Source: Rebecca billardiae RCC1528
Taxonomy: Eukaryota; Protista; Haptophyta
Length of the DNA: 64,000 nucleotides
Direction of reading: 5' to 3'
Assembly (NCBI GenBank): GCA_965240325.2
Contig: OZ251233.1
Location: 2,108,001 to 2,172,000 of the forward strand
Shown: piece by piece, positions 38,296 through 59,596 of the stretch
Layout of the letters: each line of letters begins with the position of its first letter
How positions within the stretch are numbered: the first letter of the stretch is position 1
The notes under the pieces: model-generated
The model's input: only the letters and a program-made list of their open reading frames with translations
Told to the model about the DNA's origin: nothing
Database searches by the model: none
Program-made: the position numbers and the translations under genes

Positions 38296-38798
38296 GCCTG
38301 GCGGAGCCAGGCGCAGGCTCTGTGTGCACAGTGGTACTCGCATTCGATCGTGGCATCATCAGCGAGCACCCTGCGTCGATGTCGCAGCCGGCCACCAGAG
38401 CGCGGTCGGCAGCCATGATGCTGATCAGACATGCCCTACGCGAGTGGGGCGTGCGGCAGGACCACAAAGCCCAGGCGTGTGGCGAATTAGGACTGGCGCA
38501 ATTACGACAACTCGCATATTTTCATCAGGGCGAATCAGGCCGCGTCTTTGCGCGTGCATCTCGGCATCTTCGGCAGCTTCCGTCCGCTTCACCGCGCGCA
38601 CGCCGCTCACAGCAGCTCTCCATCACGGCGCCTGCTCGATAATAATGAATAAATGATGATCAGGCGCTCGCACGCATCAGGCCTCATATTGGCCATGGCA
38701 GCGGCCCCTATTGATCTCGTCAACCAGGATCCCCGCATAAACACGCGCAAAACATGTGCATCGACCATCGACCGTCGGAGCGGCCGGGTTCTGCAGAG

Positions 38799-40583
38799 AT
38801 GCGAAGTCGTTCGCACCTGCCGTCCGGCGGTGCCGCATCTTTCGAAGCCAGGAGCGAGCACACGCACGCGCGCGAGATGGAGGGCTGGCTGCGTCTCGGC
38901 GAGGGGGAGCAGGAGCGCTCCATGTATGCCGTCCTCGCGGACACCCAGCTGACGTGCAGAGACCTCGCCGCCGACGCGCCGGGCAGCGGCACCGACGGCC
39001 CGACGCCGCCGTCGACCTGGTCGGTCTCACTCGGCTCAGGGCGCACGGCGGTGCTGCCGGGCGCGGCCGGCGTGATCCACCTGTACGTCGGCGCGAGCGT
39101 GCACGCCGTGCGCGGGCTGGACCAGGAGGACACGCGCGTCTGGTTCAACGCCCTCGCCGCCGCCGCCGACCCCTCGCGCTCCTTCCTGCCGCCCGTGTCT
39201 GCGCGCGCGGAGGACGCGCTGCTGAGCATGGTCACGCACGGCTGCTTCGAGGCGCTGGGCGAGGGGCTGCGCGAGGCGGCGCACGCGCGCACGCTGCCGT
39301 GCATGGGCCCGGCGCTCCTCGCGCTCGCGTGCGCGCGGGGCCACCTGCAGTGCCTCGACGCGCTGCTCAGCGCGGGCGTCCCGGCGAACGCGGCGGTCGA
39401 CGGTCGCACCGCGCTTGCGGTCGCCGCCGCCGAGGGCCGTTGGGTGTGCGTGCGCGCCCTCGCCGCGGCGGGCGCCGACCTGGAGATCGTCGACGAGGAC
39501 GGCTCGACCGCGCTCGCATTCGCCGCCGAGTCCGGCCACACGCCGTGCGTCCGCGCGCTCATCGAGCTGGGCGCGTCCGTCGACCACGCGAGCCAGGCAG
39601 AGCTCACGCCGCTGGCGCGCGCGTGCGCCCGCGGCCACGAGGGGAGCGTTGGCGCGCTGCTGGCGGCGGGCGCGGACGTCTCGCGCGTGGACGAGACGGG
39701 GCACGCGCCGCTGCACCACGCCGCGCGCCACGGCCACGCCGCGTGCGTGCGCCGCCTCCTCGCCGCCGGCGCCGAGCCGAACGCGACCCCGGCCGACGGC
39801 ACGACCGCCCTGATGCTGGCTTGTGTCGGCGGGCACGAGGCTGCGTGCGCTGAGCTGATTGAAGGGGGCGCGGACGTGGACGCGGCGCCGAGCACGGCGG
39901 TGACCGCGCTGATCGCGGCGTGCGTGCGCGAGCAGCTCTCCTGCGCCGAGCTCCTGCTCCGCCGCGGCGCCGCCATCGACAAGGCCCTCGACGGTGCGGG
40001 CACCGTCCTGCACTGGGCGTGTCTCAAGGCGCGGCTCAGCGTCGTGCAGCTGCTGTCATCGTATGGCGCGGCGCGCACGTTCGAGGACGGCAGCACGGCG
40101 GAGGGGATCGCGGCGAGCGCGGGGCCGCGCGCCGAGGGCGTGCTCCGCTTCCTCGAGCGCTCGCGCCACTGGACCTCCACGCTGCACCACGCCGAGTTCA
40201 TCTCCGCCGCGCGCGCGCGCGAGCTGCTTGTGAACGGCTGCGCGGACCCGCACGAGCGCGCGCCGGGCGTGCGCGACGCGCCGTCGCCCGTCGACGTGGC
40301 GCGCGCGCTGCGCGAGGCGGGCGCGGCGCCGCCGGGCTCGGCCGCGCACCTCGTGCTCGAGGCGGCGGAGCCGTGGTCCCCGTCCAACCACCACACCTTC
40401 CCGCCGCACGCGCGCGCGCGCGCCGCCGAGCTGCTGCGGCTGGGCTGCGAGCTCGCGCACGAGCCGAGGTTTGACAGCGTCGCGCAGGCGGTGCGGGACG
40501 TGTGGGTGGAGCACGTGCTGCCGCACGCGGTCACGCGCGCGGCGCACGAGCGCGCGCCGCCGCTGAGCGTGCTCGCGCCGTGA
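38799..40583 (+). CDS. PH-domain + ankyrin-repeat protein
   Basis: PH-like MEGWL...W.NALAAA, about 7-8 ankyrin repeats (DGRTALAVAA, DGSTALAFAA, GHAPLHHAA, DGTTALMLAC) and a C-terminal WSPSNHHTFP domain. Confidence 0.85.
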   Translation: MRSRSHLPSGGAASFEARSEHTHAREMEGWLRLGEGEQERSMYAVLADTQLTCRDLAADAPGSGTDGPTPPSTWSVSLGSGRTAVLPGAAGVIHLYVGASVHAVRGLDQEDTRVWFNALAAAADPSRSFLPPVSARAEDALLSMVTHGCFEALGEGLREAAHARTLPCMGPALLALACARGHLQCLDALLSAGVPANAAVDGRTALAVAAAEGRWVCVRALAAAGADLEIVDEDGSTALAFAAESGHTPCVRALIELGASVDHASQAELTPLARACARGHEGSVGALLAAGADVSRVDETGHAPLHHAARHGHAACVRRLLAAGAEPNATPADGTTALMLACVGGHEAACAELIEGGADVDAAPSTAVTALIAACVREQLSCAELLLRRGAAIDKALDGAGTVLHWACLKARLSVVQLLSSYGAARTFEDGSTAEGIAASAGPRAEGVLRFLERSRHWTSTLHHAEFISAARARELLVNGCADPHERAPGVRDAPSPVDVARALREAGAAPPGSAAHLVLEAAEPWSPSNHHTFPPHARARAAELLRLGCELAHEPRFDSVAQAVRDVWVEHVLPHAVTRAAHERAPPLSVLAP

Positions 40584-41582: not shown

Positions 41583-44541
41583 ATGGGGCTCCAGAGCGCA
41601 GGCGCGCACAAGAACGGCAGCCCGAACGGGCATGGGCCCAAGCCCAAGCCGGCGGCCGCGCGGCGCGGGCGCACCACCGCGGGCATGTGGATGGCCTTCC
41701 TGCTCGCGGCGGCCATGCTGATCGCGGTGTTTGTGGTGTATGGCAACTCGGCGCTCGACAAGGGGGTGACGAGCCCGTCGTTCTCGCCGGTGATCACCCG
41801 GCCGTACTTCTCCAGCGGGATCCGCAACGCCTCGTCAGCCATCACCGCCCTCGCGAGCGCTCGTCTCGGCGCCGGCGCCGGCGCCAAGCAGTGGTGGAAG
41901 CGCGGCGGCCTGGCGGGCGGCCAGCCGCAGCTGCCCAACGGCGTCGCGCAGATGTCGTTGGCGCAGCGGGCGCAGCGGCAGGACGCGATCCACGCGTCGG
42001 CGGCGTACTGGGCGAGCCAGCACATGCAGCGCTGGCAGCCCAGCGGCTACTGCCGCCACTTCCGCGTGGGCGACCGCAAGGACTTTCTGATGACGATCGC
42101 GCCGATGCTGACCGACCAAGGCCTGTGCCCGAGCTTCAACAAGTCGTTCGACGTGTACTGGGGGTTCGCGCTGAACGCGATCGAGGCGTTCATGGCGCCG
42201 CAGCTCAAGAAGAACGTCGCCGACGACGCCATCATCAACTCGCTCCCGATGATGATGCAGCTCGTCGGCGAGAAGCCGTCGATTGCCAACCTGCAGCACG
42301 ACTGCTTCAAGAACTTCTACAAGCCGCACAAGGGGCACGACGGGAAGCACGAGCGGTGGGCGAAGCTGGAGCAGCGCGGCTGGTGCTCGTTCACGCAGCC
42401 CGGCTTCAACGCGCGGCGCGAGCACGACACCGGCCCCGTCCGGCTGCAGTACAACGCGATGCACACGTTCGCCGACCGCAAGCACAAGAAGACGGGCAAG
42501 TTCCCTGGCCTGTGGATCGTCAAGAGCATGCTGGCCTACTCGCAGCAGGGCATCCAGCTGGTGTGGCTGCGCGAGGAGGACCTGCGCGACGACGCGAGCT
42601 TCGCGCGCTGGGCCGAGCAGCGCATCCCCAAGGGCGACTTCACCGTGCAGTACTACCTCGCCGACCCAATGCAGTGGCGCGACCGCAAGTTCGACATGCG
42701 CGTGCTCGCGCTCATCACGTCCGTGCGGCCGCTCCGCTTCTACGTGCTCGACCACGCCTTCCCCAAGATCGCGACGAAGGCGTACACGACGCGCGTCGAG
42801 TCGCTGAAGGACTCGTGCGTGCACTTCCGCATGCCCGTGTGCGAGGACCCCGTCAAGCCGTACCCCGAGTCGACGGACCGCAAGCTCTTCCGCGACAACC
42901 TGCTGCCGCCTCTGTCCTCGTATTCAGACTGGGACACACGGCTCTACCCCGCGCTGTACAAGACGCTGCTCAAGGTGGTGCTGCTCGCGAGGAAGCAGGT
43001 GCGCGCGCCGAGCCGCGCGGCCGTGCGCGCGCGCGCAGCGAGCGAGCCGGCTGGGGCGGCCGCGTCGCGCATCCCGCGCACGCCGCCGTCGCCCCCGCCG
43101 CGGCCGTCGCCCCGGCCCTCTCTCGCCGACGGCGCGGCGCGCGTGCGGCCGCGCGCCGTGCCGCGCCGTCGTCCGCCAAACAGCTGCTCAAGGCTGACCG
43201 GCGGCTGTGCAAGCACGGCTTCCTGCACAAGCGCGTGCAGGTGCTGCAGCCCGACGTGATCTACGACGTGGCCGGCAACGCGTACGTGATCGAGATGAAC
43301 ACCAACGGCTTCATGGTCGGCTCGCTGCACAAGGAGTTCTTCGACGCGACGCTGCAGATGCGCTCCGCGCTCGAGATCTCAGGCGTCGGCCGGTGCGCGC
43401 GCGGCCGCGGCCGCGGCCCGCGGCGCGCGCACGGCGCGCGCGCGCGCTCGCAGCGCCAGCCGCGCCTGTGGGCGGCGGAGGGCGGCGCGGGCTGGCGGGC
43501 GGACAGGCCGCCCGACGCGCCAAGGACACGCGCCGATCGCGCGCCGCCGCGCGCGCCCCGGCGCTCCGCTCCCCTGCGCCCCGCAGCTACCCACTCGAGC
43601 CCCGCTACCGCGAGGGCAAGAGCCGCGTGATGGGCGAGTACTGCGCGGGCACGGACGGGCTCACGCTCGCGACGGACGCGGACCTCGCGGGGCACGGCAT
43701 CCCAACGATGCCGCAGCGGTGCATGGAGCGGCTCGCCGACACGTGCACCGCGCGCGAGGGCGACGCGATCGCGACGATGCTCGACGAGTGGTGCCACGCC
43801 GGCCGCTGGCTGTCGGTGTGGCCGCCGCGTGACGAGCGCACGTTCAAGCACGTGACCAAGATCTACAAGGACGTGTCCCAGGACGTGCTGCGGCCGCTCT
43901 TCTGGTCGCCGAGCGACGGGCAGATGCTGCGCTTCGCGCGCTGGATGCAGCTGGACAGCGAGTACGTGCGCGACGGCGCGCTCGCCTTCTGCGGCGCTGA
44001 GAACCAGCGGCTGGTCGAGAACCGCACGCTCGGCGTGCCGGGGTGCAAGTGCCGCGACACGCTGCGGAGGCCCAACCAGGAGCACACGGCCAAGGTGCTC
44101 AGCATCAAGAACCCCAACCGCCCCGACGCGAAGAAGCCGAAGAACGACACAGTCGTCGTCGCCGTGGGCAGCGGCAGCCCCGCCGTCGTCTCTCAGGAGG
44201 ACACCAGCGGCAAGGACTTGCTCGGCAGCGCCGCGATCGCGCAGGGCCAGCTCAAGGCGCGCATGCCGGTGCGCGACCTCAAGCGCTTCCCGCCCGGGTA
44301 CGAGGGCGAGGGGTACGACGGCAGGTCGGACAACGGCAAGTTGACGCAGGAGTTCGAGAATGCGCGCATCGCGGGCTTCAAGATGTACAGGGGGCAGCTC
44401 GTCAAGCCAAAGGGCGAGAAGGGCGAGAAGGGCGACGGGAAGGGCGGCGGCGAGACGAAGAGAAAAGCGCACGGCGGGCACCACCGCGTCACCATCAGGG
44501 GTGGCGGCGGCGCGAGATCCCATGGCGGCGATTCGTCATGA
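41583..44541 (+). CDS. Tubulin-tyrosine-ligase-like ATP-grasp protein with an N-terminal signal-anchor (3 exons)
   Basis: TTL motifs LWIVK...QQGIQLV, VQYYLADP....RKFDMRVLALITSVRPL and DVIYD...AYVIEMN. TM segment WMAFLLAAAMLIAVFVVY. Introns 42999-43183 and 43393-43586. Confidence 0.82.
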
Positions 44542-44698
44542 GACATGATGTCCATGATAATTGATATATGATATATATATATATATATGTATGTATATAT
44601 ATACGGGGGCCAGGTTCCCCAGCATCAAGCACTGCATCTGCAGCAGCCCGCCGGCGGGCCGGGCTGCGACATCGACTACCAGTACCACCTCATCTGCT

Positions 44699-45136
44699 TC
44701 ATCGCCCACGGAGCGCGCTAGGCGGCGCGCTCACTCCCCAAGCCCCTCTTCTGCACTGACTGCAGCTGCGCGCCGCTTGGCCGGCGCGCGGCGACGCGTA
44801 CTACGACCTCATCCTCATCCAGGCGCCCACGCGGGCGCACGGGGGCGACAGCCGCGGCTGCCGCTTGCCGGAGCTACTCGCCGCTAGGTCGGCGGGCGGC
44901 GACATCGACTACGACCTCACCCTCATCCAAGTGCTCCAGAAGGCGCTCGGCCGCGGCGGCATCTGCCGTCGCCGCCGCGTGCCCCAGGCCGAGGCGGTGC
45001 TCCATCCCGGCCCCGCTCCCGTAGGGGGGCAGGGCTGGGGGTGGCGCACTGTCTGACCTGGACGGAAGGCGCGGACGCATTCTATGTGTCTGTTGCACTC
45101 TGAGCCTGACGCTTGTCCGATGCTGCCACGTCGTTA
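44699..45136 (+). repeat. TA-flanked repeat unit, copy A (degenerate coding-like fragment)
   Basis: Near-identical to 48678-49113 apart from several substitutions and indels; bounded by (TA)n tracts. Confidence 0.9.
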
Positions 45137-45148
45137 TGTATATATATT

Positions 45149-48100
45149 TGTCAAAGGAATCGCCAATCTACAGTGATTTCCAATTTCCAATCCAACATTT
45201 TACTCGCAGTCACACAGTGGCGGCGCGACCGCTGCGGCGGCGCTCGCACAAAATCCTCCAAAATCAACCTGAACCTCATCCTAAAATACAGCAGGACAGC
45301 ATGGCTGGCGGCGGCATCTGGAAGCATTCTAGATGCTTCCGAAACTCGTGAACGAAACATGAGCCGATCACTCAAAACACGCTGAGCTCACCACCGCAAA
45401 AAAGAGCCGAAGCTCGTCCACGACCTCGCGACCGTCAAGCCTCGAGACGCGTTCCCTGACATGCTAGCACGGTGCTGGGAGAACTTGGGCAAGGATGGAG
45501 ACGACGAGAACAGCGGCAAGGACGTGAACGGCCATCAGCCCGCCCCAGTTGCTCCCCTCATTGGGTTGAAGCCAGGCGTGGCAGAGCGCGCGGCATTGCC
45601 GCGCTGCTCATCGGCGATCGCGCGCAAGCGCACGCCAGACTACCTCGCCGCTGCCCTGAGGGGCATGCAGGCTGAGAAGAACCGGCAAGGCGAGAAGCTC
45701 ACGCTTCTCCGCAAGCCCATCTCCAGCGCCTCCGGGCCTGGCAACATCGCTGACCTGAACTCAGGCAGCATCGTGTCGTATGCGCGCAATGCTGCATCGC
45801 ACGCAAGGCCTCGAGCCGACATCAAGGATCACCTTGAGGAGGAGGTTCGCGCACAGCGCGGTGAGGAGGAGCGTTGCCGCTCGCATCCCCCGCCATCGCG
45901 CCACTCCATCCGCACGCACGTCGTTGCGCAGGGGATCTCAACAACTACCGCCCGGGACTCTGCGCCCGCGAGCGCGGTTCAAGAGCGCGCGGCTGAGAGC
46001 CCGCAGCTCAAGGAGTGCCTTGCGGCCTCCGAGTCATCGAACGAGGTCACCGAGCGTTCCGGGGCAGATGTAGCGCTCGACGCTGCTGCCGCTGATGCCG
46101 CTCCGACCGTCGAGGCCCTCGAGCCTGCCAACGCTGCTCGGCGTGCTGGCCTTCTGGCCGCCGCCAATGACAGCGCGGTCGTGACCGCAGTCAGTCTGCA
46201 GCCTCGCTCGCACGACTCTGTGTCTGACTCTGAGTCTGACCGATCGAACGATGACATTAACACCGATGAGTGCGACGCAAACGACCTGTATGGTCTGGCA
46301 GAGCAAACTATGCTCCAAGATGCTACGACACGTGACTCTGTCACAGCGAGCTCAAGCATCAAGTCAGCGGCCGCATTTATTATTGATGCGCCTGACCCAA
46401 ACAAATACGTTTACCCCAAAATTACCAGCCTCACGATGGCTTCCGAAGCCGAGCTGCTCGCCACGAGCGACACAAGCAGCCGCGAGATGACCGCCGCAGA
46501 GACGGCAGAGTCCTCGTCTGGCACGTATCGACTCGCGTCGAACGTAGGAAGCGCATGCGATGCAGGGGGGGCATCATACACCTGCTTGACGGCAAAGCCG
46601 CAGCAAAACCAAGTTGGCGAGCGCGACGCGCGTGCGCATGCATCAGCTGCGTCAGCCATCACAACGCCACACTCTTGCAAGGAAGAGTATTCCGCCGAAG
46701 CTGCCGCGGATGCACATGCATCACCGCTGGACAGAACGAGCGTGAAGAAGCCCAAAGAAGGCACCACAGCCTCGACGAGGGTCACTCCTCGCTCGAAGGT
46801 AGAGCGCGAATCGCCACAGAGCGCGCGCGACACATCGACCAATGCACTTGAGTCGAAGAAACGTGACTGGATAGTCATCGAAGGAGGAGTCACAGACTCT
46901 AATCCAACCAAGAAGGAACGTGTGTTCATGGCACGCGAATCCTCGGCAGGAGTGGATACACCCGCCACACACAAGCTGACACAGTCGGCTCTGAAATCCA
47001 AGCGCGCGGTACACAGCGCGATACGGGATGCACTCGCAGAAGTGAGCACCTACTACAAGGGCAAATCCTCAGATGTCACACCGGACATAATGGAGCCCAA
47101 GGATAGCAAGCTATCCGGCTTTCAACTCATTGCCAAAGACAAATGGGTGAAAGACGCAGCCAAAATCGTTCCATACAAGGCTGACAACGCTGACGCCAAC
47201 AAGATCGGATCGGTCTACGATCGATCTGCGGCAGCGATATTCAAGCAGCTGAAGGACTCTATCGAGCCTCAGTTATTCGCCTATCTGGAATCGAAGCTGC
47301 ACATCAGCGATCCGACCAAGAACTACTTGGATCTGGCGCTGCTGCTACAGATATTTGAGCGCGAGCTCAAGATCACAACTATGTCCGAACTCAGGGATGA
47401 ATTCCTGAAGTTATACCCGACAAAGGTGTCGCCCATTGGCGCATCGGACATTATCAAGAAATCCGTCGAGCAAGTCCGCTCATCTCGATATGGGAATCTG
47501 GACGATGCTACGATGTTGGTCTTCAAGCTGTATAACAGCATGCACGACCATCCCCAAGTCTACGAGTCAGTTATCTCGCACTTCGGAGCGCTCACGCCCG
47601 AGCAATGTGTGGATAACACTGACCAGATAATGGCCCAGATGGAAGATGCCTACAAACGGCACGGCTCAATGAAGCTACTCCATCAGAACAATACCAAGGG
47701 GAGAGAGACCGAAAATTATTCCAAGATACGCCAAAATGCCGATTATCAGCAAGGCACGCGGCGACGCGGTGACTTTGAGGGCGCCGAAGTCTTCGCCGCT
47801 CAGGCCCAAAAGGCTCCAGCCAATGGCGAGAGCGGGCCGAATAACTCGGACACCGGCAAACGGTGCACTCACTGTGGTCTCAAGAACCATACTGCCCAGC
47901 AGTGTTGGAAGCTCCACCCAGAGCTACGCCCCAAGGCCAACAATTACAACAAAGGCAAAAACAAGGGAGCCAACAAATTTCCCAAGGAGCGTATCCATTT
48001 CCTGGATATTCCTGCTCCGGATGCCTATGATTGACTATCAAGGCAGGGCATGACCCAATAACAAGGTCCAAAATCAAGGCCAAAGAGTGAACATTTGGTG

Positions 48101-48612
48101 CAAATAAGCCCAGGACTGACTCGGGTTACCCAAAACCGTCACACGGAAGTCCCAGCACATGACCCGTATCCTGGCATTGGCAACCATTACTGACTCCAAT
48201 TCACTCATGCACACAGATGCACAAACAATACCAAGCCCAAAATCACTCATAATCCAAGCTTAGTCCTCACAGACGAGCGCATATTGGATTGAGGGGGGGT
48301 GTCAAAGGAATCGCCAATCTACAGTGATTTCCAATTTCCAATCCAACATTTTACTCGCAGTCACACAGTGGCGGCGCGACCGCTGCGGCGGCGCTCGCAC
48401 AAAATCCTCCAAAATCAACCTGAACCTCATCCTAAAATACAGCAGGACAGCATGGCTGGCGGCGGCATCTGGAAGCATTCTAGATGCTTCCGAAACTCGT
48501 GAACGAAACATGAGCCGATCACTCAAAACACGCTGAGCTCACCACCGCAAAAAAGAGCCGAAGCTCGTCCACGACCTCGCGACCGTCAAGCCTCGAGACG
48601 CGTTCCCTGACA
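45149..48612 (+). mobile_element. Gag-only (pol-less) Ty1/copia-type LTR retrotransposon, very recent insertion
   Basis: Identical 313-bp LTRs at 45149-45461 and 48300-48612 (TGTCA...TGACA). 5-bp TSD ATATT at 45144-45148 and 48613-48617. PPT GAGGGGGGG at 48291-48299. GC is much lower than in host genes. Confidence 0.95.
45461..48034 (+). CDS. gag: Gag-like protein (857 aa) with a CCHC zinc knuckle
   Basis: CTHCGLKNHTAQQCWKLHPELRP (47864-47905 and following) is a copia-type CX2CX4HX4C knuckle. No protease, integrase, RT or RNase H motifs follow. Confidence 0.85.
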   Translation: MLARCWENLGKDGDDENSGKDVNGHQPAPVAPLIGLKPGVAERAALPRCSSAIARKRTPDYLAAALRGMQAEKNRQGEKLTLLRKPISSASGPGNIADLNSGSIVSYARNAASHARPRADIKDHLEEEVRAQRGEEERCRSHPPPSRHSIRTHVVAQGISTTTARDSAPASAVQERAAESPQLKECLAASESSNEVTERSGADVALDAAAADAAPTVEALEPANAARRAGLLAAANDSAVVTAVSLQPRSHDSVSDSESDRSNDDINTDECDANDLYGLAEQTMLQDATTRDSVTASSSIKSAAAFIIDAPDPNKYVYPKITSLTMASEAELLATSDTSSREMTAAETAESSSGTYRLASNVGSACDAGGASYTCLTAKPQQNQVGERDARAHASAASAITTPHSCKEEYSAEAAADAHASPLDRTSVKKPKEGTTASTRVTPRSKVERESPQSARDTSTNALESKKRDWIVIEGGVTDSNPTKKERVFMARESSAGVDTPATHKLTQSALKSKRAVHSAIRDALAEVSTYYKGKSSDVTPDIMEPKDSKLSGFQLIAKDKWVKDAAKIVPYKADNADANKIGSVYDRSAAAIFKQLKDSIEPQLFAYLESKLHISDPTKNYLDLALLLQIFERELKITTMSELRDEFLKLYPTKVSPIGASDIIKKSVEQVRSSRYGNLDDATMLVFKLYNSMHDHPQVYESVISHFGALTPEQCVDNTDQIMAQMEDAYKRHGSMKLLHQNNTKGRETENYSKIRQNADYQQGTRRRGDFEGAEVFAAQAQKAPANGESGPNNSDTGKRCTHCGLKNHTAQQCWKLHPELRPKANNYNKGKNKGANKFPKERIHFLDIPAPDAYD

Positions 48613-48644
48613 ATATTATAGAGCTAGCACGGATATGCTGCATA

Positions 48645-48677
<33 letters not shown>

Positions 48678-48680
<3 letters not shown>

Positions 48681-49113
48681 TCGCCCAGAGCGCGCTAGGC
48701 GGCGCGCTCACTCTCCATTCTCCAAGCCCCTCTTCTGCAGCTGCGCGCCGCTTGGCCGGCGCGCGGCGACGCGTACTACGACCTCATCCTCATCCAGGCG
48801 CCCACGCGGGCGCACGGGGGCGACAGCCGCGGCTGCCGCTTGCCGGAGCTACTCGCCGCTAGGTCGGCGGGCAGCGACATCGACTACGACCTCACCCTCA
48901 TCCAAGTGCTCCGGAAGGCGCTCGGCCGCGGCGACATCTGCCGTCGCCGCCGCGTGCCCCAGGCCGAGGCGGTGCTCCATCCCGGCCCCGCTCCCGTAGG
49001 GGGCAGGGCTGGGGGTGGCGCACTGTCTGACCTGGACGGTAGGCGCGGACGCATTCTATGTGTCTGTTGCACTCTGAGCCTGACGCTTGTCCGATGTGAC
49101 TGCCACGTCGTTA
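48678..49113 (+). repeat. TA-flanked repeat unit, copy A'
   Basis: Second copy of 44699-45136, between (TA)n tracts at 48648-48678 and 49112-49136. Confidence 0.9.
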
Positions 49114-50183
49114 TATATATATATATATATATATATGTCTAGCCGTCCTCGAAGCGCCTGCGCCATCCAGATGCAGCGAGGAGGCGAGGCACACGCCGGG
49201 CAGGGCGGAGCCACGCTGCGAGATACCAGACTCTATACATTGAATAAGGGATTTTTGTTCCTCGGAAACAAAGTGCGAGCGGCACAGCTTGGAAGATGCA
49301 GCTCGAGAGCCGCCAAGCCGCACGAGAGCGAGGCACGAGGCACCATCGTGCAGAGGCGGGCGCCCTGAAAGATGCAGGCCCAGAACAGCTGCAGCCATCA
49401 GGACAGTGGGCGCTTCCGAAACGAAGGGCGTCGTCCGCTGCGTGAGCGAGAGAGACACAGGGCCGCGTCGGTCGGCTCGGTGCCAGATGAAAGAATCCAG
49501 GCCACCAATTGGCTGTCCAGAGCCACCATGCCAACCCGCTCAAAGCTCAGGAGCAGCACACGGCAAGTTAGCTAGTTCTGGGCCGTTGTGCGCGAGCACA
49601 GAGCAGGCTCGAAAGACCCTCGTGGCACGAGAAGAGGGTGGCCAAGATGGCAGCCGGACTTGCGCTCGGCCGCCTGCCTCGGGCCGATTGGCAGGCAGGT
49701 GTTGATACCATACGGCGCATTGCGCTCCCACCGTCCTCTTAGACAATCAGTTCATTATTGTGCCAATAACCCCACATATATATATCGTCGTCAGTAACTT
49801 TAGCAGTAGAAGCGCGATGTAAGCACATGCGCTCGGCGGAGGTGTGACCGCCATCCGATTCGTCTATTTTATAATAATGACACTTCAGCAGGCGGCCGTC
49901 GCCCCCGCCGGCCCGCTGGGTACAGCCGTACAGCGTCGGCGCTGATCAATCACGGTCACGGATCATATATCGCTGCGCGCGGTTGTCTGCTGTGCCAATG
50001 AGGCGGATACCTCTTGTGCGGGCTGGCCACTGGCGGACGTCCACGGTATCGAGCATTGCAGGCGAGGGCACCGACGCGCCTCCCGTGCGCGCAGTGCCGG
50101 TGCGGCCAGCGGGCTGCGCGCACGCGCACTCAGGCCCCGCGTCAAGCACGCCGTAGCACCGCGCGCCACGCCCAGGCTTCGGC

Positions 50184-50471
50184 TCAATCGGCCGGCTTGC
50201 GATTGGGGTCGCGCTTGCCAGGGAAGTCGGGGATGGCCCTATTTTCCCAGCTGTCGATGTTGATTCTCCCCGTCAGAATGGCCAGCTCCTGCTCTGGATC
50301 GAACTTCGTGCGCTTGATGGTCTCCTTGCCCCGCGCTCGCTTCGCCTCGTCGAAGTAGCTCTGCCGCCCTCGGACGATCTCACTCAGCCAGACTGAGCCA
50401 AGGCCCATGAAGGTGAGGAAGGGCAAGCCCACGAAGAGGAAGGATGGCCGCCTTCTCTTCGCCGCTGACAT
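50184..50471 (-). CDS. COX16: Cytochrome c oxidase assembly protein COX16
   Basis: FLFVGLPFLTFMGLGSVWLSEI TM segment, then FDPEQE and DSWENRAIP motifs; 95 aa. Confidence 0.82.
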   Translation of the reverse strand: MSAAKRRRPSFLFVGLPFLTFMGLGSVWLSEIVRGRQSYFDEAKRARGKETIKRTKFDPEQELAILTGRINIDSWENRAIPDFPGKRDPNRKPAD

Positions 50472-50592
50472 CGCTGACCGCGCGCGGAAACAGCCGAGAC
50501 GCGTCCACGCGGCGCGAGCAGCAGATTCGCGCCAGCCCACCGGCACGGGACAGCCTCGCCTCCGCTCGGCTCGGCCGCATTCAGCAGGGACG

Positions 50593-51597
50593 ATGGCGGC
50601 CGTCATCACGCTCGCGCTGCTCAGCCATGCTGCACCTGCCGTGGGCACGACCACTGCGGGCGCCGTCGCGCAGGCGGAGCGCCTTCTGCGCACGTACGAT
50701 CCGCTCCTTGGGGCCGCCTCGCGCCTCTTCGCCCCGCCCACGCGCGACGCGTTCGTCGCCATCTACGCGTGGTGCCGCCGCGCGGACCAGATCGTCGACG
50801 CGCCAGAGGGCTCGCCGGCCGAGGTGCTCGCGCAGCTGCGAGCGCGGCGGGAGGCGCTGCGCGGGCTGTTCGCCGGTGAGCCGGTGGACCCGCTCGACGC
50901 CTTGCTGCAGCGCACGTGCGCGCGCTACCCCGCGCTGCGCGAGGAGCTCTTCACCGCCATGCTGGACGCGATGGAGGCAGACGCGCAGCCGGTCGTCCGG
51001 TACGAGACGTGGCCGGAGCTCGAGCGGTACTGCTACGGCGTGGCCGGCGTGGTGGGCGAGATGTCGCTGCCTCTGCTGCTCGAGGAGCACCGCGAGGACG
51101 CGGTCAAGCCCGCCGTCGCGCTCGGGAACGCCATCCAGCTGTGCAACATCCTGCGCGACCTGCGCACTGACGCCGCGCTCGGCCGGCTCTATCTGCCCGC
51201 TGAGGACCTGCGCCGCTTCGGGCTGGACGAGGGCGACATCTTCGCCGCGCTCGGGCGCCAGGACCCCGCCTGCGGGAGCGTTCGCGAGCTCATGCTCGCA
51301 CAGACGCACCGCGCGCGCGCGCTGATCGCCGATGGCGTCGAAGGCATCCGCATGCTCCCCCAGAGCGTGCGGTTTGCAGTGCGCTCGATCGCGGAGCTGC
51401 ACCTCGCGCTGCTCGACAGGCTGGACGAGTACGAAGATCGGCCGTTCGGCGAGCGCGTCAAGCTCTCCGCGGGCGAGAAGGCCGCGGTCATCGCGCGCAC
51501 CTGGCTGCAGATGACGACCGCGAGCGTGGCCCCTGCGGCGGCACCCCCGTCGGGTGCTGAGCCGGAGCCCAGGGCTGGCGCCGGCGCCAACAAATGA
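50593..51597 (+). CDS. PSY: Phytoene/squalene synthase family protein (divergent phytoene synthase)
   Basis: AIYAWCRRADQIVD, YETWPELERYCYGVAGVVG and LGNAIQLCNILRDLRTDAALGRLYLP.EDL..FG; short signal-like N-terminus. Confidence 0.85.
   Translation: MAAVITLALLSHAAPAVGTTTAGAVAQAERLLRTYDPLLGAASRLFAPPTRDAFVAIYAWCRRADQIVDAPEGSPAEVLAQLRARREALRGLFAGEPVDPLDALLQRTCARYPALREELFTAMLDAMEADAQPVVRYETWPELERYCYGVAGVVGEMSLPLLLEEHREDAVKPAVALGNAIQLCNILRDLRTDAALGRLYLPAEDLRRFGLDEGDIFAALGRQDPACGSVRELMLAQTHRARALIADGVEGIRMLPQSVRFAVRSIAELHLALLDRLDEYEDRPFGERVKLSAGEKAAVIARTWLQMTTASVAPAAAPPSGAEPEPRAGAGANK

Positions 51598-58591: not shown

Positions 58592-59596
<1,005 letters not shown>

Follow-up and report, generated by a model that had tools for sequence, protein, structure and literature searches.

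A stretch of 64,000 nucleotides from the haptophyte Rebecca billardiae RCC1528 (contig OZ251233.1, positions 2,108,001 to 2,172,000, hereafter the window) contains a long terminal repeat (LTR) retroelement on its plus strand. The full element is 3,464 bp long. It is bounded by two LTRs in direct repeat which match at 313 of 313 bp, an identity of 100%. The bases immediately outside the pair differ, making the boundaries sharp. The LTR termini are TG..CA with short inverted ends, as expected of an LTR retrotransposon. The same five nucleotides are found on either side as a target site duplication (TSD). The polypurine tract (PPT) includes an uninterrupted purine run at 48291-48299. The coordinates of all features are collected in Table 1.

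The interior is occupied by a single open reading frame (ORF), referred to here as gag. Its ATG spans the junction of the 5' LTR with the position of the primer binding site (PBS), where the LTR ends in ...CCCTGACA and is followed by TGCTAGC. Base composition gives a chance of an open frame of ~1e-13 over all 857 codons and, for the N-terminal 470 codons by themselves, of ~2e-6. The remaining two frames of the interior contain 26 and 34 stops. The distance from the gag stop to the 3' LTR is 265 bp, closed in all three frames. No pol remnant was found after gag, as tblastn with pol-bearing retroelement proteins matched only the zinc knuckle across the 64-kb window. The element lacks pol and is therefore non-autonomous. 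An earlier note on this DNA had described identical LTRs, a perfect TSD, a PPT, one uninterrupted 857-aa ORF filling the interior, an ATG on the last base of the 5' LTR and about 265 bp free of pol between the stop and the 3' LTR. Each of these was recovered, although the TSD lies in a (TA)n tract.

The absence of any LTR difference in 313 bp gives a 95% upper bound of ~0.0096 on LTR divergence. Taking generic rates of 1e-8 to 1e-9 substitutions/site/year, the insertion would be younger than roughly 0.5-5 million years. The "very young" of the earlier note is therefore relative.

The 5' LTR contains a TATA-like TAAAATA at 45282 and a palindromic hairpin at 45313-45340 (dG -13.8), a candidate regulatory or R-region element. 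Ahead of the gag ATG, short ORFs of 8-16 codons begin at three further ATGs (45301, 45333, and 45359). Within gag, in-frame methionines follow the first AUG at residues 69, 284, 490, and 544. No AATAAA is present anywhere in the element. ARAGORN predicted a "tRNA-Pyl (cta)" in each LTR (45294-45371 and 48445-48522). This was classed as a false positive, as Rfam found no tRNA there and the prediction corresponds to the palindromic hairpin.

Ty1/copia elements typically have a PBS of TGGTAGC.. or TGGTATC.., complementary to initiator tRNA-Met. The sequence at the PBS position of the window element resembles this type with one mismatch in the CCA-complement and was taken as a lead only. No genuine tRNA gene was found in the window to match against it. 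Self-priming of the Tf1 type was not supported, since the LTR contains no complement of at least 8 nt to the PBS window.

The Gag-type protein

Near its C-terminus the predicted protein carries a CCHC zinc knuckle, CTHCGLKNHTAQQC, at aa 802-815. The C-terminal part (aa 471-857) was used in an exhaustive HMMER search of 1.84 billion proteins with a cut-off of E<=1e-3. Forty-two matches were returned and 41 of these aligned to the knuckle and the tail that follows it only. The consensus among the matches was CxHCGKxGHxxxxCWxLHPELRP, the window protein reading CTHCGLKNHTAQQCWKLHPELRP. Copia-type proteins were present among the knuckle matches (Retrotran_gag_2 in five and Pol_BBD in four), as were gypsy-type proteins (Retrotrans_gag in four, Ty3_capsid in three, and one complete gypsy-type Gag-Pol). 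The knuckle and tail are common to both types of Gag and therefore mark an LTR-retroelement nucleocapsid, not a superfamily. The copia-type matches did not detect one another by phmmer.

The remaining match, P0002, is a protein of 335 aa from marine plankton and was the only one to reach the region upstream of the knuckle (E 2e-9). This region, at ~aa 580-750, was predicted to be all-helical by AlphaFold (pLDDT ~40) and is referred to as the core. The mean pLDDT was 38 for the C-terminal half alone and 40 with a two-sequence alignment. A Foldseek search of the PDB with the core model gave no match at E<=0.001, the best E being 2.9. PDB sequence searches with the C-terminal half, the N-terminal half and the core profile gave no meaningful match. 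Word-indexed protein searches with the C-terminal half were blank both for partners of 471-1500 aa, a range which takes in Gag-Pol fusions, and for those of 213-677 aa. A word-indexed search with a two-sequence profile retrieved nothing beyond P0002. Exact look-ups of the ORF product and of two proteins encoded by the host DNA returned no record. A locus scan of metagenomes with the profile gave matches to the knuckle alone, one of which (L003) was an ordinary gypsy-like element of the gag-protease-reverse transcriptase type. Scans of viral and prokaryote genomes with the profile gave nothing.

A Pfam scan of the full ORF at E<=1 found no gag family and no zf-CCHC, with neither Retrotran_gag_2/UBN2 nor Retrotrans_gag matched. 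A match to LEF-4 at this threshold was attributed to chance. As regards Ty1/copia, Retrotran_gag_2 was absent from P0002 as well as from the ORF, and there is no pol whose domain order could be read. As regards Ty3/gypsy, the ORF matched neither Retrotrans_gag nor Ty3_capsid, and pol is again missing. The earlier note had called the C-terminal half a copia-like Gag with a CCHC knuckle. The knuckle is present. The copia-like part did not stand, given the lack of a Pfam gag match, a motif which fits copia and gypsy about equally and AlphaFold models which were unusable. The case for a Gag is based on where the ORF lies in the element, on the knuckle of nucleocapsid type and on a predicted helical domain of suitable size.

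The N-terminal 470 aa are composed of 17% Ala, 12% Ser, and 14% Asp+Glu, with acidic patches. The earlier note had described this part as an Ala/Ser/acidic extension and the composition agrees. The extension had no match in Pfam or the PDB. Order-promoting residues account for 12-30% of each 50-aa block in the extension compared to 34-42% in the core. The conserved VYDRS motif is preceded by 584 residues in the window protein and by ~110 in P0002. The extra 470-550 residues appear specific to the window element, with no counterpart in the 335 aa of P0002. The extension is clearly real coding sequence because the frame stays open. At 0.59-0.79, its GC content at third codon positions (GC3) appears lower than recent capture of a host gene would suggest. 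From its composition the extension is probably intrinsically disordered. By analogy with the prion-like domain of Ty1 Gag, a scaffolding role is a reasonable hypothesis.

The relative in marine plankton and the gag-only layout

P0002 aligned to the window Gag over aa 582-817 with 27% identity (blastp E 4e-17). Its 90% cluster includes a second sequence, P0043. P0002 is encoded on contig L001 (JGI sample 3300009023) and P0043 on the Tara Oceans metagenome scaffold L004. The first base of the L001 gene is the A of ...CCACGACA, with TGGTACC next (..CGACA before the junction), and the gene ends at 1236. This ATG-on-junction layout is the same as that of the window element. A G-run PPT, GAGCGAGGGGGGC (also given as GAGGGGGGC), is located 162 nt past the end of the gene and leads to the LTR start TGTCGCGG. 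The window counterpart is GAGGGGGGG followed by TGTCAAAGG. L004 opens with 34 internal nt and the PPT, both as in L001, continues with a 686-bp stretch running from TGTCG to CGACA and passes directly into the gag ATG. It follows that what comes after gag in L001 belongs to the 5' part of the same LTR whose 3' part precedes gag. L004 ends just after gag, with the downstream region outside the scaffold. Read together, the two sequences suggest a layout of LTR-gag-spacer-PPT-LTR in the relative, with no pol seen.

Collinear nucleotide similarity was also found between the two families at their U5 ends (positions 265-302 of the window LTR), with a score reached by 2 of 300 shuffles. At the PBS position the relative has TGGTACCA where the window element has TGCTAGCACGG, and L001 and L004 agree with each other in the PBS region over TGGTACCA alone. 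Both families have a perfect 8-nt palindrome directly after the LTR, namely TGCTAGCA for the window element (45462-45469) and TGGTACCA for the relative (230-237 in L001 and 721-728 in L004). A short PBS and a dimerization site are possibilities. Within the 686-bp LTR of L004 an AT-rich block (38-46% GC) with repeated TTCAA/TTGAA was observed at 243-491, followed closely by a TATA-like TTATAGG. The L001 contig begins 14 nt past this TATA-like motif, and its 3' LTR copy does not contain the AT-rich block. Possible explanations are a U3 enhancer function for the block or a mis-join of L001 at a repeat boundary.

The gag-only organization is probably a stable trait of the lineage and not an accidental feature of one copy, because the P0002 element likewise has the junction ATG, a gag stop close to the knuckle, only a short spacer before a G-run PPT, and LTRs with TGTC..GACA ends. 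The alternative of a one-off internal deletion in an autonomous element, by template switching or later recombination, would make the window element a dead-on-arrival copy. Only one copy is present in 64 kb, and LTR elements commonly give rise to deletion derivatives (PMC4350172). This origin is improbable all the same: a relative at 27% identity has the same pol-less layout, a similarly short gag-PPT spacer and a natural stop, both Gags ending ~35-45 aa past the knuckle, and the window ORF finishes at a clean stop rather than within a truncated pol frame.

The element is probably a bona fide, recently integrated LTR element of the type known as terminal-repeat retrotransposons with a GAG domain (TR-GAG). 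It would be a non-autonomous element inserted in (TA)n which provides its own Gag and uses helper enzymes in trans, with the gag-only organization conserved in its lineage. Transcription would start in the 5' LTR and translation at the AUG spanning the U5/PBS junction, producing Gag. This protein would be tripartite, with a long, disordered region at its N-terminus, a capsid-like core made up of alpha helices and a nucleocapsid knuckle of the CCHC type, and would package the RNA of the element itself. An autonomous LTR element would act as helper in trans, providing protease, reverse transcriptase/RNase H, and an integrase which would accept TGTC..GACA ends and make 5-bp duplications.

A number of points weigh against this reading. 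Trans-mobilization, copy number and the helper are inferred from a single copy in the 64-kb window. The 5-nt match of the TSD is weaker evidence than usual because both copies sit in a (TA)n microsatellite. No canonical PBS was found after the 5' LTR, where TGCTAGCACGG begins with TGC and not TGG. The capsid fold of the core is presumed only, as Pfam, PDB sequence searches and AlphaFold were uninformative. L001 is probably a chimeric contig. In its stretch at 1600-2535 it departs from the L004 LTR after ~1600-1640, its GC content falls from 61 to 46% and a gene for Fe-S cluster biosynthesis is located at 1678-2238. L001 may also be transcript-derived, in which case its pol-less layout could reflect splicing and not genomic structure.

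Splicing could likewise have produced the window element. An autonomous master with the same LTRs may have made a gag-only subgenomic RNA, with pol spliced out and the PBS, the PPT, and both R regions kept, which would now and then be packaged, reverse-transcribed and integrated to leave a gag-only copy with identical LTRs and a TSD. On this view L001 would represent the corresponding spliced mRNA of a relative. Spliced gag RNAs are made by Ty1/copia elements, examples being plant shGAG and the Drosophila copia RNA with an intron of roughly 3 kb (PMC5580714). The window Gag and P0002 both stop soon past the knuckle, and the compositional break and unrelated Fe-S gene downstream in L001 are what a transcript-derived sequence might show. 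No pol-linked protein with this Gag core was found among the 1.84 billion representatives or in the word-indexed searches. Plant shGAG RNAs end prematurely without a 3' LTR (PMC5580714) and therefore cannot be copied, and a splice-junction signature is not recognizable without the master element. A retro-copied spliced RNA is thus considered an unlikely source.

The earlier note had proposed an actively mobilized parasite of a copia helper. This was unsupported, with one copy visible, no pol in the window and no pol-linked relative in any search. A broader interpretation is put forward tentatively and is on the whole doubtful. The window element and its relative may belong to a long-lived, self-perpetuating gag-only lineage in marine/algal protists, an obligate capsid-only parasite of unrelated autonomous elements. 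Its capsid family has no pol-linked member in 1.8 billion proteins, and the lineage would have kept its architecture at 27% Gag identity, with a disordered module of ~500 aa added in the window element. Within that lineage the module could possibly serve in condensate formation or in hijacking the helper's particles.

The insertion site

The host DNA is 58-84% GC, with 1-kb windows of up to 84%, compared to 52-61% GC for the element. Many long spurious ORFs are present on both strands of the window. No second copy and no solo LTR was found in the window by blastn. A host segment of ~450 bp (44697-45147) is repeated at 48680-49124 with 99% identity, one copy on each side of the element. Both copies run into (TA)n and the element is inserted in the (TA)n of the first copy. 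The flanking repeat is either a genuine tandem duplication of the host or an assembly duplication around a heterozygous insertion. Motifs of ~108 nt recur at 44660, 44785, 44893, 48760, and 48868, and these further host repeats make a genuine duplication plausible.

The ~450-bp copies also bear on the suggestion that the locus is in part an assembly artefact, with LTR identity arising from collapse or polishing, or with a false haplotype duplication around a heterozygous insertion. Such an artefact is very improbable. The LTR boundaries are sharp with proper TG..CA ends, a TSD and a PPT are in place and the ~108-nt repeats offer the tandem duplication just described.

The 10-mer GCTAGCACGG occurs only twice in 64 kb, at the PBS position (45463-45472) and 10 nt past the 3' LTR (48623-48632). 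The second copy belongs to a 29-nt filler of non-TA sequence that sits in the (TA)n tract. The repeat is not significant by score, which was reached by 26 of 200 shuffles, but its placement is odd. The pair may represent filler DNA from a complex integration/repair event, or coincidence.

Pfam domains were identified on both sides of the element (Table 1). The GC-rich DNA and the presence of phytoene synthase indicate that the host is a very GC-rich photosynthetic eukaryote, and a human origin of the window was rejected on the same grounds.

Table 1. Positions in the window of the parts of the retroelement and of neighboring genes
Feature	Position	Strand	Remarks
Left TSD	45144..45148	+	ATATT, same 5 nt as 48613-48617
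5' LTR	45149..45461	+	313 bp, TGTCA...TGACA
Single ORF (gag)	45461..48034	+	857 aa plus stop; A of ATG is last base of 5' LTR
N-terminal extension (aa 1-470)	45461..46870	+	Ala/Ser-rich; low-order composition to ~aa 550; no Pfam or PDB match
PBS-position sequence	45462..45472	+	TGCTAGCACGG, directly 3' of 5' LTR, within ORF
All-alpha Gag core, presumed capsid domain (aa 582-745)	47204..47695	+	Sole part with a relative (P0002); helical in both low-confidence AlphaFold runs
CCHC zinc knuckle plus WKLHPELRP tail (aa 802-824)	47864..47932	+	Nucleocapsid-like; C-x2-C-x4-H-x4-C
Non-coding spacer, gag stop to PPT	48035..48285	+	All three frames closed
PPT	48286..48299	+	GGATTGAGGGGGGG, directly adjoins 3' LTR
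3' LTR	48300..48612	+	313 bp
Right TSD	48613..48617	+	ATATT, same 5 nt as 45144-45148
Ankyrin-repeat protein	38754-40580		Pfam
Tubulin-tyrosine-ligase domain (TTL)	41583-43256		Pfam
Phytoene synthase, complete	50407-51594		Pfam
Short-chain dehydrogenase (SDR)	58595-59587	-	Pfam

Comparison with known systems

TR-GAGs are defined as LTR elements of <4 kb in which a single Gag ORF is accompanied by a PBS, a PPT and a 5-bp TSD, and their reported hosts are angiosperms and the brown alga Ectocarpus (PMC4350172). For TR-GAG1 no autonomous partner could be identified, and the class is said to be probably mobile all the same (PMC4350172). The window element is similar in its length of 3,464 bp, its LTRs, PPT, 5-bp TSD, and single Gag-type ORF, and in the lack of pol or an evident partner. 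It differs in a number of respects. TR-GAGs were found with the Pfam gag models Retrotrans_gag and UBN2 family (PMC4350172), whereas the window Gag is invisible to the models used for their discovery. At 857 aa it is ~2.5x the size of the 335-aa P0002, due to the 470-550-aa extension, which is probably disordered. The Gag family has one relative only, which is similarly organized. The host is a GC-rich alga-like eukaryote compared to the angiosperms, although TR-GAGs of Ectocarpus were already known. The earlier note had stated that gag-only elements are described mainly from plants. This is correct, but a non-plant host is not in itself new as Ectocarpus has been reported (PMC4350172).

Ty1 of Saccharomyces (Ty1/copia, Pseudoviridae) is autonomous and encodes gag plus pol by frameshift, whereas the window element encodes gag only. 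Translation of Ty1 gag begins inside the 5' LTR and the PBS, TGGTAGC.. of the initiator-tRNA type, is within the gag ORF. The junction ATG of the window element therefore has a precedent. No sequence similarity between Ty1 and the window protein was detected in Pfam and PDB searches. The N-terminal disordered prion-like domain of Ty1 Gag is needed for assembly of retrosomes and virus-like particles and for transposition (10.1101/2023.02.27.530227). The window extension is much longer and Ala/Ser/acidic-rich.

Spliced gag RNAs, such as the 2-kb RNA of Drosophila copia and plant shGAG (PMC5580714), are likewise gag-only expression units derived from LTR elements. They are RNA isoforms of autonomous elements, whereas the window element is gag-only at the DNA level and has LTRs and a TSD of its own. 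Large retrotransposon derivatives (LARD) and terminal-repeat retrotransposons in miniature (TRIM) also have no pol but contain no intact ORF. BARE2 likewise depends on a partner for a missing protein, but it keeps pol without gag, which is the opposite arrangement.

Gag-only elements leave open the question of why a retrotransposon parasite keeps its own capsid gene. Possible answers are preferential packaging of its own RNA with borrowed enzymes, or interference with the helper. The window element is a clean, intact, and apparently very recent gag-only example outside land plants. Its divergent Gag was missed by standard models for the annotation of transposable elements, and pipelines based on such models would therefore label the element as LARD, TRIM, or an unknown gene. 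The architecture shared with a distant relative hints that gag-only organization can be evolutionarily stable and not a product of decay. The extension raises the question of whether it drives condensates, as does the prion-like domain of Ty1. Current understanding is not overturned by the window element, which extends the known TR-GAG class.

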